Shown here one piece after another: positions 26,122-34,390 of a stretch of DNA of 64,000 nucleotides. Under the pieces are notes generated by a model. That model made no database searches. It was not told where the DNA came from and was given only the letters and a program-made list of their open reading frames with translations. The translations under genes were made by a program, and so were the position numbers. Positions within the stretch are counted from its first letter, which is position 1. The number at the start of each line of letters is the position of its first letter. Origin of the DNA: Oikopleura dioica (Eukaryota; Animalia; Chordata); the NCBI GenBank assembly GCA_907165135.1, contig OU015567.1:12958001-13022000 (forward strand), in the 5' to 3' direction.

Positions 26122-27430
26122 ATGTCAGAGAACGTTCCCTCGATAAGCATCCAAAACCTCCGTCATTCTGCAGAAGAGCGGCAAAAGCTCTTCAAGGGTT
26201 TGACAAAAGTCGGCTTCCTGTACATTTGCGACCACGGTGTCCCAAAATCAATTACCGACCGAGTCAAGAGACTATCGCCGGACGTTTTTCTTGCTGACAA
26301 ATGGGAAAGACAAGAGCTCGCACAATGGAGAGAGGGAAAACTTTCGTACGGAGATATTTACAACGAAAAAGACCAACGCGTGGTGAATGAAAGATCCGAT
26401 GTCAAATTGGACAAGAAGGAAATCGATGAAGCGTTTTTCGATTATATTTCAGAAATGTACAGAGTTGGTATGTTTCGAGTTTTGGCAAAGTTAATTCATT
26501 ATTAGGGGAAATCCTTGTTTACTGGGTCGAAAAAGTCTTGGGACTTAAAAATGGCGCTCTTTCAGAAGCGTATGGAAAAGACCCCATTCTTGTTCAGGAG
26601 AGGATACTGAAAATAGCGATGTTCATTCTAGTGCTAAAGGTATCCTCATAAAAGCATATTAACTACTATCATACTAAGCCTAATGAACGATGGGCTTTTG
26701 TGGAACATGTTGATAGAAACTGGTTGATAAATGTTTTATTTCGCCGTGACTCTTCGTTGATTTCAACCAGAAAAAAGTAGTATTTTGACCTTCCTCATGC
26801 AAAGTGAAGTCGGCGGCTTGGAGATGGATTTCAATGGTAGATGGGAGGAAGTTCCATTTAGAGAGAACACCTTTACCGTCAATCTGGGGAATATACTTGA
26901 GCATGCGACTTATGGTGTCGTCAAAGGTGAACAATAATGCATCGAATAGAGTAGATTGGAGTAAATTCAGCGACCTGGCATCGAGTAAGAATGCCCGCAA
27001 ATCAAAAGCGACATCAGTGGCCGACTTTCTTCACGTTGAGCCCGAAGTCAACTTTGTTTCAAATTCAAGACTTTGCGTGGAACAAGGACAACTACCAGCG
27101 TCGTCTGATTGAGGCTCGTAAACAAACTAAACTGAGCTAAAATGAATTATTAATAGGAACGTGCTCGTATTATCGGCAACGATAATCGCCACCAAGCAGA
27201 AGTTCTTACACCGGATACAAATATTCTTGAGTGGCTAAAAGAACACTCAAAAGAATTCGAGGTAAAATTCTCCGATTGCACTGACTGTTATAATTTAAAA
27301 GGCGCGAAAAGATTTCCCGAAAGTGGATTCACAAATTTTGGAGATGGTTTCGCGGAAACAAGGGGATGAAATTGGATATGATGTGGCGGAAAACGAGTTT
27401 AGATATCAAAACTACGAGTCAAAAAAGTGA
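26122..27430 (+). CDS. 2-oxoglutarate/Fe(II)-dependent dioxygenase (IPNS/DIOX-like)
   Basis: DIOX_N-type start VPSISIQNL...VGFLYICDHGV, HVD, ILTFLMQSEVGGLE..GRWEEVP..TFTVNLGNILEHAT...TWHRV. 3' exons join via a GC-AG intron 27114-27156 to the stop at 27430. Confidence 0.85.
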
Positions 27431-27809
27431 TTATTTTTGCAGTTTTTTGTACAGCAGATGTAAAATAAATTTCAACAGTGAGAATCACGGTATTCGCTTA
27501 TCTTTCAAAAACCTAAAAACAAAACCAAAATGAGGCTAACTTGATACGCTTGTTACGACGATAGACTGACAGTCGGTATTTCTAGCGACACGAAAAAAAA
27601 TCTGATTTGGCCTCGGGTATACCGTATACGTTGAAGTTCATGTCTGGAACGGGTTTTTAAATTCGAAATTTATTTCGGGACGTTGAAGTTGAGCACTCTG
27701 AAGTTGACAGCTCTTGTACGCTGCACGCGGTTAAACTTACACCACCAAGAATGCTTGGTGCCCAGCATTATATAAAGACTATTAACGAGCTGATTTTCAA
27801 AGAGAAACT

Positions 27810-28866
27810 ATGAAAGTCTTTACCAGTTTGATTTTAGGCTCCTTTTTCGACCGGGCCCAATCCACAACCACTTTTACCCCCGTCCAAGGAATTGCTAAAA
27901 CTGCATTCGAAGGAGAGATTCGATGCAGAAAACTTGGAGGTCATCTTGCTTTCTTCCGAAATGCAGCTGAGTTCGAGGATTTCAACGAAGCAACAGGCCA
28001 CGGCGGTAGCAATCACTGGATCGGTGTCCAGCAAATTGGATCCTCATCAACCTTTAAGAACGTTGACGGAACAACACCATGGCTGAATTGGAACAACGGC
28101 GAGCCAAATAACTCAGAGGAACGATGTGTTGAGCTATACGTTCAGCCGGGTGATGAACCTGCTGTTATGAACGATAAATCATGCTCCGCCAGCAGATTGT
28201 ATAGTTGCCGAATCGACGATCCCCCAACTTGCGCAGACATCGAGCCTAACTGTAACGCGTCAAATTGCGCGACGGGCGGTTTCGAACAAATGTTTTGCCC
28301 AAAGACATTTGGGCTCTGCGACACTTGGACGCCTCAAACCATCGGTGATTTAACCTTTTTGGATAATTGGACTTCTGAAACCTGTGTTGACAAAAGCCCG
28401 GCTTGCGAAGGGTGGGCAAGTCGAAACCAATGCATGGTTAATCCAGTGTACATGCTGAAAAAACTGCCCTGTCAGTTGCAAGCAATGTGAGCCAACCTGC
28501 GCTGGATTTTTGGAACTACCTGATGACATAACCATGTCCTTCTCGAAAGCCAAACGAACTTGTGCTGTAATGGGAGGATCACTCGCATACTTCGACTCTG
28601 AAGAAGAGTACAATGTGTTCAGAGCTGGTAGAAGCGCTGAGCGTAATGATTGGATCGGCATCAAAAGGAATTCAAGACTTTTCAAGACAGTTGCGAAGAC
28701 TATTCCCAGCTGGACAAACTGGAAAGACGGCGAGCCTAGCATGGATGACACGACTAAAGCTTGTGTCAAGGCAGGATACACGGGTCGTTGGAACGATGAA
28801 GACTGCAACACCAAGTTCCAAGTCACGTGCAGATTCGAGGATTCTAGCTACTGCGAACTCTATTAA
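27810..28866 (+). CDS. Secreted C-type lectin - ShK - ShK - C-type lectin protein (one frame break)
   Basis: Signal peptide, CRD1 with EPN...MND, two ShK Cys patterns, CRD2 with EPS...WND. Removing one A from run 28458-28463 joins the two ORFs (MLKNCPVSCKQCEPTC). Confidence 0.88.
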
Positions 28867-29164
28867 GAATCCCTCATTTGAGCTCTAGCAAGAGGAAAAC
28901 TTGCTGCTTTCGATGAAATAAGATATTCTCAATAAACTGTTATCTTTGATAAAAAATGATTTCTTTTATTGCATTTGAACAGAGTAAAGAAGATTCGTTC
29001 GACTATAGGTAAGCACAAAGAGTAGGCGTCAGATACAGTATGTTGTTTTGCATTTTTTTCTTTCGAAATGATCAGGAATTCGGTCTCATGGCTTTGAAGA
29101 GATTCTGGAAGAGAAGAGGTCTTCTATGTCTTCACTGTTGAAGTCCATGTAGTTTTGTTTTTCC

Positions 29165-30053
29165 TTAGCAGCTATGGAACTTTACACAAGAGCAGCCGTG
29201 AGTGATAACATCCTCGATTTCTACGATTTGATGATTTTGCGTAATAAGGCGGATTGAACTTGTTGATGTGGCAGCGCATCCGACATTTTTCGAGATGCTG
29301 GTTTCATGAATCGAGTCATAGCTAAAAATGGAAATGAGAAAAGAACGATTCTTCCCAGACAAAATAGAAGCATCTGGCGACGGATGTTTATAGATAGATA
29401 TAAATGAGCATATTTTTACATAAGAAGTAGTCATATTTTTTGAAGGCTGAACTTACAGATGATTTTTGCCTCTGATCAGGGATCCAGGGCAGAATCCTCC
29501 ACACATTCCAAGGTTGAGGTACCACTTTCCTCTTATTTCTAGCACGGATGGGTGATTTTCTTTCCCAACCAAGCGGGCTTTTGTATACGATTCCATATGC
29601 TGAATATAAAAATTGAGAATTACTCAATTTGATGCTGGAATAATAACGAGAAGTTCAGGATGAAATCCGGTTAGCGCACGTGTCTCATTAATCAGTTTGT
29701 ATATAGTGTACTTTCTTACCTCGATGGAAAGATAAAGATCGTGAAGAGAACATTTCGTATTTTCGCAAAAATCTTGACGATGATAGAATATTTGTTTGGT
29801 GTTTCGGGCGGATCTTGCCAAAGAAAGCGGACTGATGCTTTCTGAGCTAGAAAAAAATTAATCTTCTTGCATTTTCTTTTTATATTTACCTGAAACAATG
29901 AGGTGGCACAACAAATTTATCCTGTTGACTTGGCAAACTGACTGGAGACTGATGGGCACACTCGATTATCTCCGATAGTTTTTTGACGAGTAGATCTGGC
30001 GTAGTTGCTGCAACGAGTTTTAAAAGAAGAACTGCCTTGACAATATTTGACAT
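29165..30053 (-). CDS. Divergent TGF-beta superfamily ligand (196 aa)
   Basis: Four GT-AG exons (30053-29890, 29846-29720, 29599-29457, 29321-29165) total 591 nt in frame. Signal peptide, RSAR furin site, CSLHDLYL, CGGFCP (CxGxC), NH, GCAATST and CSC. Confidence 0.85.
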
Positions 30054-31462
30054 TTTCCACTGATTATTTGGGATATTTTTGTTTTTCTTTGTGCGGAATG
30101 AGCAAATAAGTGGTGTGAGTTTTAGTGTTCCGAAATTGCTTATATGCTTTGAGAACTACAACTTAGGGGCGCTAGCGACGCGCGGTGTGTTTCGCGTCGA
30201 GGATGATGGCGCCCTGATTGACTTTTAGTCGTGATAAGGTTCTTTCAATTTCGTCTTCGACCACTGAAGTGCAGATTCTGGTATCAAAATTACATTCTCG
30301 CGCATGGATAGATGAATTCTCAGAATCTATCGAGTAGTTGCATCTGCATACAGTATGCAGCATACTGATGAATATTCTTCGGGGATCATTTAACAAAAAA
30401 CATATGAATATATAATGTGACGTATATTTCTTAATAACTTATTATTATTGAAAGAAACTTTTCTACGTAAAAATATAATGGAACATAACATAACATAGTT
30501 TTATGTAATGTGAATTTTCTGTTATCCTTCTTAATCATACCGATATAATCATAACTGTATGAGATACAGTGTATATAAAGACAGATTGTAGGTGTACCTA
30601 GCAATGTAAGTTTCGCCCATGTCGTCACACTATCAACTGATTGTATATCATAGCTATATATAAAAGGCTACATATTATATAGCCTACAAATCCTACTATC
30701 ATCCTGTGATTCTATAGAAGTCAGTCTATCAGTCTAATACAATCAGTAGTCTATCAGAAACAGAAATTTATATGTATAGACTATACAGTATAGTATATTC
30801 TATGTATAAGTATAACATATTCTAAAAAATCCTCAATAAGAATCATAGCGTTAGAATGAAGTGCGTCTCCAGGAAAGAAGCTTACTACTGTCGAAAAATT
30901 CTCTACCCTTTATCCGCCAATGACCTTTTATGGTCGGAACTAATTTTGATTCCCTTTGAAAATGTCATTAGTCAATAGTTACGACTGTCGCAGAAAATTT
31001 AACTCACTGTTACTTATTGCTTCTATTGCTCTGTAAAGTTGACATCGTCAACCAAATGATTAGTAAAATAACTTTTTGACTGAATAATTTCATGTAGGTT
31101 TATTAATGAAAGCATTCAGATTAGTATTGTTCTGATAGCATGCTCTCCAGTCACCAGACGAAGCGCAACTTTGAAGCCAGAAGATTGCCACATAATCTTA
31201 ATAGTATTTAGGCATATAGGGTATATGATATACCGTAAATCATATATTTAGGCATCTATAAAAGGCGTGTCTCTCGGTACGTCTCGTCGTTGAAATTCTC
31301 TTGACCGTTTAGGATGAGTCGAAATAGCTCGATTTTGACAAACGCGATATATCATATAGAATGGTATATGATGGGATATATCATATATGGAATTTTTATA
31401 ATTTATCAATAACGTAATGTTCAACGAAATCTCCTATGTGGACATTGAATTTCCATAAATTT

Positions 31463-34390
31463 TCACTTACTGATGCTCCAGAAATAATAAATGCTTCCCA
31501 CGATAGCCACAAAGCAATAGACATAAAGCTTACTTGGGATCCAGTCTAGCAATAAAATCTAGTCAATGTTATCAGTTTGATGTCTTTGGATCCCAAACAG
31601 TAGACTGTCTATTATCAGCGCGATGTACCTCCACTCATCACTTACAGTACTTTCATCGTCGTTTTGCTGCATCGTTGTAGTGATGAAATCTAAATGAACC
31701 GCCTCAACCTCTTGAATAGTAACGCACATTCTCAGTTTTAAAAGCCGCTTTCTGAATTTCTATTTTAAGTTCTCTCAGCAGCTGCGAATGTAATCATATG
31801 GAAACAACGCTTTTGAAATTGGGAGCAGTTCTTAAGTTCTTCAATTTGATTGTAATCGTTTTGGTATTGAATCAATTTTGAGATTAAGCTTACCGATAGC
31901 TTCTACCGCTGGCCTGAAACGGGCTTCTTTCTCTAATACCGTATTAACTTGTTTTCGTGAAACGAAGCCCGATTCCTGAGTTCTCGCGCTAATGGCCGTG
32001 TTGTATTTCGCACTGATGTCGACATCGCCTTTCTATCTTGAGAATAATCTTCAATTGTACCTCGTTTACGCACGTATAACAAAGAGATTAGACCTCGTGC
32101 TTTTTAGAACTTGATTTCAATGAAAATTACGATCCTGAACAACCAAATAGCTTCGAATGGGTGTTAAACATAATTTCTGACGCTACAGCTTTTCCCCCGT
32201 CTTCTTCAAGCTCTAGTTCGTAGCACATTGATGTCGTTTTCGCTAGAGAATCGTTAGATATAGAATGGAAGATGTTCCCTTACTATCTTCTCCGTGAGAG
32301 TTTCTTCTTGGCATATCAATTTCAAAAGGAGGGGGTCTCTTGATATTCAAATATCTCGCGATGTAGTCAATGAAGATGACTTGAAAATATCGAGGAAGCT
32401 TGTGAGTCGCGCTCGATCGGAAGTGTACATTACAAACGACGACGCTCATAATCACGGAGAAAGATACCATCATGATTGTAAACAGCAGATAGCTACTTTT
32501 GAAAGGCTCATTTAAGCAATTAGATTTTATCCTTTTAATAAATCTGTCTAAAATGGCGTAATAGTTTCTTGAATTAAATTTTTCAAGCCGTATCCTGAGA
32601 AGCGGTATTTCCATCGACGTTTCTGGAGTATGCTTACAAAGAAAATAAATCATAAGCTTCCGTCTGCCCTCACCTTAGCTAAGAGCGTAAGAAAGACTGT
32701 CTGTCCGATCAAAATGGAAATTGAAAGCGTCATTTTTTCGCAGGCATCCGTTGGGAGGTAGAAGACGAAAATAGAGAGGAAGAACATTAGCCATATAGGG
32801 AGAATCATGCTAAAAGATATCATTCGATTTTCTTTAAGGGCAAAGCTGTGACATAGCTATGGGTGTAAGCTGTGACATTTATCAAAATATTTGACAGATG
32901 CTCTTATGAGCGATGACTGAGTTAACGGAAAAAGCTACAAGGAAGGAAAAAGAATCTTCGAGGTCATACTTACTTCAGGATGTAGAATAGGGGCATTCGT
33001 TGGAAGTGATATTCAAAGTGAATCTCCTTGAAAGACAGGTCGGAGTCCATAGAATCGACAATCGAGATATTTGTTCGCAACTTTAATTGGCTTTTTAACA
33101 TACTTTTTTACAAACTTAAGGTACAAATGAATATAAGCCCGAGTCACAAAACCCACTCGGCAGAAACATTTGAGCCTTCAACATAAGAAGTTTCGCCGGC
33201 AAATGTTAGGTTGTAGTCGAGATATGAGTTTTCTGCTCAGGATAAAAAGTGTTCAACTACAAGTAGCTTGTTAGTAAGCAAGCAAAGCGTGTTAAAATGA
33301 TTGTCTTTCAGTAAGCCTTTCCAGAACCCATTCAGCGGAAACATTTGAGCCTTCTACATACGACGTTTCAAGAGCAAAGTCATAGTTAAAATCCAGATTG
33401 CGCGCGTCTAATTCTAGGGCTAAAGCAAGCGAGCGAGAGCAGGTTAACTTGAGCTTGAGCTTTATCCCGTAACAAAGTCGGTGGATCGGAAAATCAAACT
33501 GCATTTTTGTCGATCTATTTTTGATAAAAAATATAATTAGACTAGTAGCCATGGAGTTGACCGATTGATTCTCTAAGTCTATTTTCTGAAACCAATTATA
33601 ATTATCAAATCCTTTACAAAGGGAAAGACCTTGACATTCAGCGAGCAAGTAGATTTATAAAGAGCTGCAGATAATTCTTCAAGAATAGATCTATCATAGA
33701 TGTACAATTATATGAAACATAGTAATTCAATTTTACTTTGCCTTGGATCCAATACACATTATCCAAGACAATTAATATACAAGAAGCTTTTACGCATATA
33801 AATATCGTGAATAAAGGTAGATTTATGCAATCATGAATTATTCGCCGGCACTCTTATTTTCGAAGAACCTATCCTGGCGGCATCCATGAAATATATCCAG
33901 TGTTGTAGAGCTTCAACTTCGTTTTGAACTTAGTTTCAAACACACCGTCCTTGTTGTTGTAGAACACCGTTCCAGGCTTCCAAATTAATTGGCTATTGAT
34001 ATTCGTCACCGATATATTGCTATTAATTAATGAGAAAAACGAAAATCAATTAAAGGTACTTATAGTCTTCTGGATTCCAGCTAAGGCGTTCATCAGTCCA
34101 GTCAACCACGTTATATCCTATTAATTGCTTTAGATGAGCAATAAAATCGTATGGCTTACCGGCCATGACAATTTCTTCCTCTCGCATCTTTATTGTAAGA
34201 AGGCGTTGAACAACCATGGCTCAGGTGGAGGTTTTTTTTAATAGCTCTAATACAATTCACAAAGATTATATAAAGTGATAAAACCGTAAAGTGATTTTCT
34301 ACCGCGCTTGAATAGACAAGCATTTTTGATTATATAATAAAATCATCCGATGATAATTGAAAAGAAACGAGATGAACTTCATGGAATTTG
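31463..34390 (-). CDS. Nicotinic acetylcholine receptor non-alpha subunit (gamma/delta/epsilon-like M2)
   Basis: WTDERLSWNPEDY, IWKPGTVFYNNKDG, WMPPALYKSTCSLNVKVFPF(D)RQKC, QRMPLFYILN, M2 EKMTLSISILIGQTVFLTLLAK, M3 YLLFTIMMV..VVCNVHFRS, pre-M4 DEWRYIALIID. No vicinal CC in loop C. Both ends are approximate. Confidence 0.9.

Follow-up and report, generated by a model that had tools for sequence, protein, structure and literature searches.

Among secreted growth factors folded around a cystine knot, a disulfide ring of eight members is common to the TGF-beta, CTCK/DAN, glycoprotein-hormone and PDGF types; in NGF/Spaetzle the ring has 14 members and in Noggin it has 10. The TGF-beta family is further marked by a C-C pair, the first cysteine of which makes the bond between the two chains. 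This cysteine is missing in GDF9, BMP15, GDF3 and Lefty (Lefty1/2), accepted members that have a single cysteine in place of the pair, keep the six-cysteine knot with its CxGxC and terminal CxC motifs, and carry an RxxR site before the mature domain, behind a pro-region of ~250 aa. A second set, the GDNF-family ligands (GDNF, neurturin, artemin and persephin), comprises precursors of ~160–220 aa with short pro-regions and furin-type cleavage: these keep the C-C pair, form disulfide-linked dimers and are without the TGFb_propeptide domain and without the W-x-x-W motif of finger 1, the latter being missing in AMH as well. Knots of the CTCK, DAN and glycoprotein-hormone types (sclerostin, gremlin, norrin, GPA2/GPB5) are small secreted proteins that also have the eight-membered ring, have an extra cysteine soon after the CxC, and are made without a cleaved RxxR pro-region. 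Here we describe g7648, a gene of the planktonic tunicate Oikopleura dioica whose product probably belongs to the TGF-beta superfamily, as a highly divergent member restricted to its lineage. It lies in a 64,000-nt stretch of DNA (the window; positions 12,958,001 to 13,022,000 of contig OU015567.1, Okinawa assembly GCA_907165135.1).

The gene occupies positions 30053–29165 of the minus strand and consists of four exons separated by three short GT-AG introns with good donors and T-rich acceptors; the spliced product is 196 aa in length (Table 1). An exhaustive HMMER protein search, with exon 3 alone (residues 98–144) as query, retrieved a public protein of 196 aa, CAG5113554.1 (UniRef100_A0ABN7TCR7), to which the spliced model is identical at every residue and which was used as whole-protein reference. 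The entry, Oidioi.mRNA.OKI2018_I69.chr2.g7648.t1.cds [Oikopleura dioica], is placed on the same 889-nt span of the same contig and is an automatic model, unnamed and without a Pfam family on record. The four exons and 196 residues proposed in the initial annotation are thus borne out to the letter. The gene had also been called hidden, which it is not: the identical model was already public, though unnamed and without a domain call, and g7648 is uncharacterised rather than hidden. In the literature searched we found neither a published description of g7648 nor a listing of O. dioica TGF-beta ligands. A longer prodomain encoded upstream was considered and rejected, there being nothing coding-like on the minus strand from 30054 to the 3′ end of the neighboring nicotinic-receptor (nAChR) gene, and the public model begins at the same ATG. 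No paralogue of g7648 was detected in the window by tblastn of each exon, and an Rfam scan of 27000–33000 returned no match.

Comparison with further lineages establishes that g7648 is a real gene under purifying selection. Open reading frame (ORF) fragments obtained in protein searches (P0002, P0003, P0005 and P0006) led to eight contigs in ENA marine metagenome assemblies, which fall into three lineages: B (L006–L008), C (L004/L005) and D (L001–L003), the window gene itself being lineage A. Orthologues entered the alignments as separate exon rows, not as joined full-length proteins. Amino-acid identity to lineage A is 91–93% in B, ~60–77% in C and ~50–65% in D, and in all three the gene is split into the same four exons, by introns that lie in phases 2/0/2 and have GT-AG borders. 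The orthologous exon 1, with the same phase-2 donor, is found in each, and the exon-3 homologues P0002 and P0003 stop at the same donor. Between lineages the exons differ in length by 24, 12 and 3 nt, always a multiple of three; intron lengths vary freely. The putative cleavage site reads RSAR in A and B and RSGR in C and D, within a kept stretch S-L-x-R-S-x-R-N, and all ten cysteines (two in the pro-region, eight in the C-terminal part) are invariant in lineages A–D wherever the contigs reach. One contig of lineage D (L001) carries the neighboring nAChR gene, hence the locus is syntenic. The ratio of nonsynonymous to synonymous substitution (dN/dS) is 0.12 between A and B and ~0.11 between A and C, dS being saturated in the latter comparison. 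Since three lineages share its exon structure, its frame, its RxxR site and each of its cysteines, and since substitutions are strongly biased toward synonymous ones, the gene is real beyond chance.

RNA libraries add to this picture. A 234-nt contig from a poly(A) plankton metatranscriptome (X1), of the lineage of the window, covers 29759–29990 at ~96% identity: read codon by codon, 4/4 exonic differences are synonymous third positions, while the 43-nt intron 1 differs by three substitutions and two indels, and indels are confined to the intron. Oligo-dT RNA-seq reads from three runs carrying the same species label (X6–X8, with 16, 3 and 3 reads) cover only 29485–29541; here all five differences are synonymous third positions, and the count over RNA-library reads and contigs comes to 9/9. 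In the same frame, the loose ends of the X6–X8 reads encode parts of a sibling protein, V-G-R-D-S-H-P-S-V on the upstream side and C-P-D-S-L-I-R-P-K-H-S-L on the downstream side. Reads of X6 run on as ...CTA T, matching lineages C and D at the splice of exon 3 to exon 4; unspliced sequence would give ...CTG TAA. Judged from these reads, transcription and splicing of g7648 appear to take place in one sibling lineage or more.

For the window's own lineage the RNA record is less favorable. The X1 contig retains intron 1, unspliced, and may thus be DNA or pre-mRNA; among the reads and contigs placed on the gene none is spliced RNA of this lineage. On these two points rests the view that g7648 is non-functional, a chance chain of ORFs or a mis-predicted model. 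We regard it as very improbable: it is already contradicted by the conservation data, that is, by the exons, phases, splice sites and cysteines kept in four lineages and by indels that respect the frame in exons and leave introns free to vary, quite apart from the dN/dS of 0.12, the uniformly synonymous exonic differences and the spliced reads of the sibling lineage.

A side observation concerns the origin of the RNA-seq reads. The X6–X8 runs show <90% identity to g7648 and place zero reads on the neighboring lectin exon; the sequenced laboratory strain is therefore a cryptic lineage other than that of the window assembly.

The predicted protein has the layout of a small secreted pro-protein. 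At the signal-peptide-like N-terminus the Kyte–Doolittle maximum over 11 residues is 2.25–2.7 in lineages A, B and D, and small residues (VAA, VSS or VSA) precede the presumed signal cut. Residues 17–65 constitute the pro-region, with ~53 aa from signal to RSAR. Its core is predicted to be an amphipathic helix, strongly conserved and containing two cysteines: the block LSEIIECAHQS is invariant in the four lineages, making it the best-conserved stretch of the protein, and AlphaFold2 (AF2) places a helix at residues 20–35, where the block reaches a predicted local distance difference test (pLDDT) of 63–67. The C-terminal part that follows R69 is 127 aa long and has cysteines at 82, 87, 130, 134, 160, 188, 190 and 196. 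Six of these supply the knot (C87, C130-x-G-x-C134, C160 and C188-x-C190), and C130-G-G-F-C134 together with C188-S-C190 makes an eight-membered ring. The interchain cysteine is absent, its place being taken by glycine (G159-C160; V-G-C in A, C and D). Spacing from the first knot cysteine (C1) to CxGxC is 42 residues versus ~28 in the TGF-beta family, a surplus of ~14. Several of these points had been made in the initial annotation, and on them the sequence agrees with it: a signal-like N-terminus, an RxxR site (conserved as RS[AG]R) after a short pro-region, the CxGxC and CxC knot pattern, G-C for C-C, two extra flanking cysteines and a lengthened finger 1. A cystine-knot fold of the growth-factor type is very likely.

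As to the kind of knot, the eight-membered ring excludes the NGF/Spaetzle and Noggin types. The PDGF/VEGF knot was rejected on spacing: there is no C-x-G-C-C followed by six residues to the next cysteine. Within the long finger-1 stretch, the segment N-H-P-S-V-L-E-I-R-G-K-W-Y-L (residues 111–126; 29515–29560, minus strand) weakly resembles the blade hairpin of GH43 beta-propellers and, separately and over three stretches, a repeated segment of P0004, a prokaryote-like protein of 1126 aa (E 8e-6); both likenesses are probably due to chance or confined to the level of the hairpin. Matches of exon 3 to GH43, ankyrin and heterodisulfide reductase were likewise set aside, as short chance likenesses of a hairpin or of C-G-G-F-C-P.

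Among knot families, three independent methods put TGF-beta first. In searches with Pfam hidden Markov models, TGF_beta (PF00019) was the sole family matched, by the whole protein and by each of six sub-ranges, at 17.1–18.8 bits (E 0.0029–0.0099); the alignment spans profile positions 26/27–104 of 104 and stays in register from a point just ahead of CxGxC through to the terminal CxC. Over the same whole protein and six sub-ranges, Cys_knot (PF00007), DAN (PF03045), Sclerostin, Hormone_6, PDGF and Noggin (PF05806) gave no match at E ≤10; scans exon by exon gave no family match from single exons. The second line is structural: the ESM Atlas holds the protein (model with a predicted template modelling score of 0.64 and pLDDT 0.65), and the five family sets nearest to that model are TGF_beta clusters (GDF10, GDF6-like and AMH), with template modelling (TM) scores of 0.48–0.53 for residues 70–196, spanning 72–191. 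The third is a Foldseek search with the better of our AF2 models, which were computed from the four-lineage fragment alignment for the full length and for the mature part only: ranks 1–15 are all chains of BMP-2, BMP-6, activin, GDF11, TGF-beta or myostatin, over 97–128 columns. In addition, the full-length AF2 model has a helix at 148–158, between CxGxC and the next cysteine, where TGF-beta ligands have their wrist helix, and the best of 48,161 chains in the VIA comparison is pro-myostatin (Z 2.8), with residues 77–190 of the model lying on the growth-factor domain.

The motifs point in the same direction. C1 is followed by x4-L-[YFL]-L-x-[IV]; CxGxC takes the form C-G-G-[FY]-C-P; C-x-x-T follows the mid cysteine; [VI]-I-T-H-G-C-x-C stands at the end, and the RxxR site lies 13 residues before the first mature cysteine. 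As far as can be read from the sequence, these motifs and the placement of RxxR follow the TGF-beta pattern. Nor does absence of the interchain cysteine exclude membership of the family, since the accepted members GDF9, BMP15, GDF3 and Lefty are also without it. From these four g7648 nonetheless differs in a pro-region of ~53 rather than ~250 aa that has no TGFb_propeptide, in scoring below the family cut-off, in the ~14 extra residues between C1 and CxGxC, in having no W-x-x-W, and in two additional cysteines, one before C1 and one ending a six-residue tail. In architecture, given a precursor of ~200 aa whose pro-region is short, the closest analogues among accepted members would be the GDNF-family ligands, ahead of BMP or Nodal precursors; the likeness is one of architecture only. 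GDNF-family ligands keep the C-C pair, and no sequence or structural match between them and g7648 was obtained.

Several results weigh against placing g7648 in the TGF-beta superfamily. The Pfam score falls short of the curated gathering score of 27 bits, and sequence and profile searches of the PDB (with the exons, the whole protein, the C-terminal 77 aa and two family profiles) returned no TGF-beta chain at E ≤10. The G-W-x-x-W motif of finger 1 is absent from residues 88–129 in all lineages, and TGFb_propeptide (PF00688) gives no Pfam match to a pro-region of only ~53 residues. The AF2 models are poor, with a mean pLDDT of 51 for the full length and 47 for the mature part; the helix at 148–158 has a pLDDT of <50 and does not form in the mature-only model. 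None of the top Foldseek matches is significant (E 0.3–1, TM 0.2–0.34, root-mean-square deviation ~10–12 Å). In VIA the Z of 2.8 is tied with unrelated helical matches, with pro-TGF-beta2 and SOST next (Z 2.4), and against the Atlas the AF2 model finds noise only, a CYR61-like CTCK protein coming first at TM 0.31. A language-model feature search ranked Noggin first (0.87–0.88), followed by NGF/Spaetzle/IL17 clusters (0.83–0.88): all of these families are cystine-knot cytokines, and all scores fall below 0.9, the level at which such a match becomes more than a mere lead. Noggin is of similar length and is secreted, with a C-terminal knot that ends in closely spaced cysteines; it differs in its ten-membered ring without CxGxC, gave no match in Pfam and is not a structural neighbor. 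The TGF-beta-family ligand claimed in the initial annotation therefore survives in part: by Pfam score, Atlas neighbors and Foldseek ranking this family comes out best, but always below threshold, and structurally CTCK/DAN is only slightly worse.

The comparison of lineages C and D is a further point of this kind. Here dN/dS is 0.63 overall and ~1 in exons 3–4, and introns are at least as alike (80–81% identity) as exons (74–76%), with frame, splice sites and all cysteines kept. As a pattern of sequence this would be either a fixed scaffold whose surface evolves fast or the product of two recent paralogues. It is unlike a conserved developmental morphogen, suggesting caution about a role in core patterning; if evolution between C and D is fast, a role outside core patterning is suggested.

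Two intronic features of the further lineages deserve mention. Intron 3 of C (L004:562–771) and of D (L002:1316–1539) is 81% identical, above the 74–76% of the exons on either side, with a long common block (...CTCGCCATATAAGTATATATCTTCACAGGCG...). This could be a conserved intronic element, or else it could indicate that C and D are paralogues of recent origin whose coding parts evolve fast. In lineage B, intron 2 (L006:1100–1342) is far longer than that of the window and contains the motif GTCCCA[A/G]ACCAGGATTATTTTC twice; its sequence suggests a small inserted repeat or a miniature inverted-repeat transposable element (MITE).

Given scores that all lie under accepted thresholds, g7648 might be a lineage-specific secreted cysteine-rich protein, with a role in the house, in reproduction or in defence, whose knot-like spacing arose by convergence. 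The restricted distribution of the gene would fit: the relatives retrieved by the exhaustive exon-3 search were all O. dioica-like metagenome ORFs, with no annotated relative in other assemblies; two scans of Joint Genome Institute (JGI) metagenome contigs, with the exon-1 and exon-3 alignments, found no relatives; and a word-index protein search returned only the g7648 protein itself and two read-through ORFs of the near lineage. The dN/dS near 1 in exons 3–4 of C and D, and a feature search that mixes knot families at lead-only scores, would fit also. Convergence has more difficulty with the agreement of three independent methods on TGF-beta, with a Pfam register that is correct from CxGxC to the terminal CxC, with an RxxR site positioned as in the TGF-beta family, and with knot cysteines that are invariant across lineages, and we think it unlikely.

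A different possibility is that g7648 encodes a stand-alone knot of the CTCK/DAN/glycoprotein-hormone type, for example a BMP/Wnt antagonist or a component of the 'house' matrix, rather than a TGF-beta-type ligand. In the ESM Atlas, mucin CTCK (Cys_knot) and DAN/Sclerostin clusters follow just under TGF_beta at TM 0.46–0.49, and both the CYR61-like protein at the top of the Atlas rows for the AF2 model and SOST in VIA belong here. The cysteine five residues past the CxC, together with the one before C1, would sit more typically in a CTCK or glycoprotein-hormone knot, and the fast evolution of the mature part between C and D is compatible with such a role. On the other side, none of Cys_knot, DAN, Sclerostin and Hormone_6 is detected by Pfam where TGF_beta matches every sub-range, and no chain of this type occurs in the Foldseek top 50. 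A conserved pro-region with RxxR 13 residues ahead of the first mature cysteine is foreign to DAN, CTCK and glycoprotein hormones, as is the helix predicted in g7648 between the finger pairs; C-x4-L-[YFL]-L-x-[IV] after C1 and C-x-x-T after the mid cysteine fit the TGF-beta pattern. We consider a knot of this type quite unlikely, and continue with the TGF-beta-type ligand as the preferred interpretation.

If g7648 is indeed such a ligand, its maturation can be outlined. The 196-aa pro-protein would be secreted by way of its signal peptide and cut after R69 by a furin-type convertase, releasing the growth-factor-like domain. Knot disulfides would join C87 to C160, C130 to C188 and C134 to C190, and a fourth bond, C82–C196, would tie the N- and C-termini together. 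The invariant helix of the pro-region may remain bound to the mature part, as does the first helix of TGF-beta prodomains. With the first cysteine of C-C absent, the canonical interchain disulfide is impossible, and the mature protein would therefore be a non-covalent dimer, as in GDF9 and BMP15, or a monomer, which may act on receptors of the TGF-beta type or as a competitor. Such a state had been proposed in the initial annotation, by analogy with GDF9, BMP15, GDF3 and Lefty.

Extreme gene loss in chordates has a model in O. dioica, and to understand how this animal still forms a chordate body it is central to know which signalling ligands have survived or been reinvented. The species reportedly lacks Nodal. 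One may imagine that it carries one or several miniaturised TGF-beta-type ligands, with a short helical pro-region and no interchain disulfide, which serve as non-covalent ligands or competitors at the remaining TGF-beta/BMP receptors; we put this forward as a speculation that is itself doubtful, of which g7648, if it were true, would be the first testable member. A conserved, expressed and secreted knot protein missed by standard domain annotation would give a depleted TGF-beta toolkit one more candidate ligand or antagonist. It would also reveal how little such a ligand can make do with: ~53 aa of pro-region and no bond between the chains, alongside one extra disulfide at the termini. For now this value is limited by family membership that stands on sub-threshold evidence.

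Table 1. Features of g7648 and of its predicted product, in positions of the window.
Feature	Position	Strand	Length	Description
Exon 1	29890..30053	-	164 nt	ATG 30053-30051; residues 1-54 plus 2 nt of codon 55
Intron 1	29847..29889	-	43 nt	GTAAAT..TAG
Exon 2	29720..29846	-	127 nt	Residues 55-97: last part of pro-region, RSAR site, first part of mature domain (Cys82, Cys87)
Intron 2	29600..29719	-	120 nt	GTAAGA..CAG
Exon 3	29457..29599	-	143 nt	Residues 98-144 and 2 further nt; carries CxGxC and the long stretch of finger 1
Intron 3	29322..29456	-	135 nt	GTAAGT..TAG
Exon 4	29165..29321	-		Residues 145-196; stop TAA 29167-29165; predicted helix, finger 2, CxC, terminal Cys
Signal-peptide-like N-terminus	30006..30053	-		Residues 1-16; hydrophobic, from reading of the sequence
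Pro-region helix	29946..29996	-		Residues 20-36; predicted from alignment of four lineages and AF2
R66-S-A-R69	29804..29815	-		Putative proprotein-convertase-type site, from sequence and conservation
C130-G-G-F-C134 (CxGxC)	29489..29503	-		Followed by Pro135; invariant as CGG[FY]CP in all lineages
G159-C160	29276..29281	-		Where the family has C-C; V-G-C kept in lineages A, C and D
C188-S-C190	29186..29194	-		CxC half of knot ring; end of Pfam TGF_beta profile (104/104) aligns at residue 190
Cys196	29168..29170	-		Extra C-terminal Cys; K-F-H-S-C kept in A and D; putative partner of Cys82
Candidate poly(A) signal	28965..28970	-		AATAAA, ~195 nt past the stop; from sequence only

Downstream of g7648, two adjacent C-type lectin genes or exons (27810–28866, plus strand) run toward its 3′ end in convergent orientation. 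A tail weakly resembling ShK is present in the first; in the public annotation the pair is represented by Lectin_C proteins of 226 aa and 110 aa.

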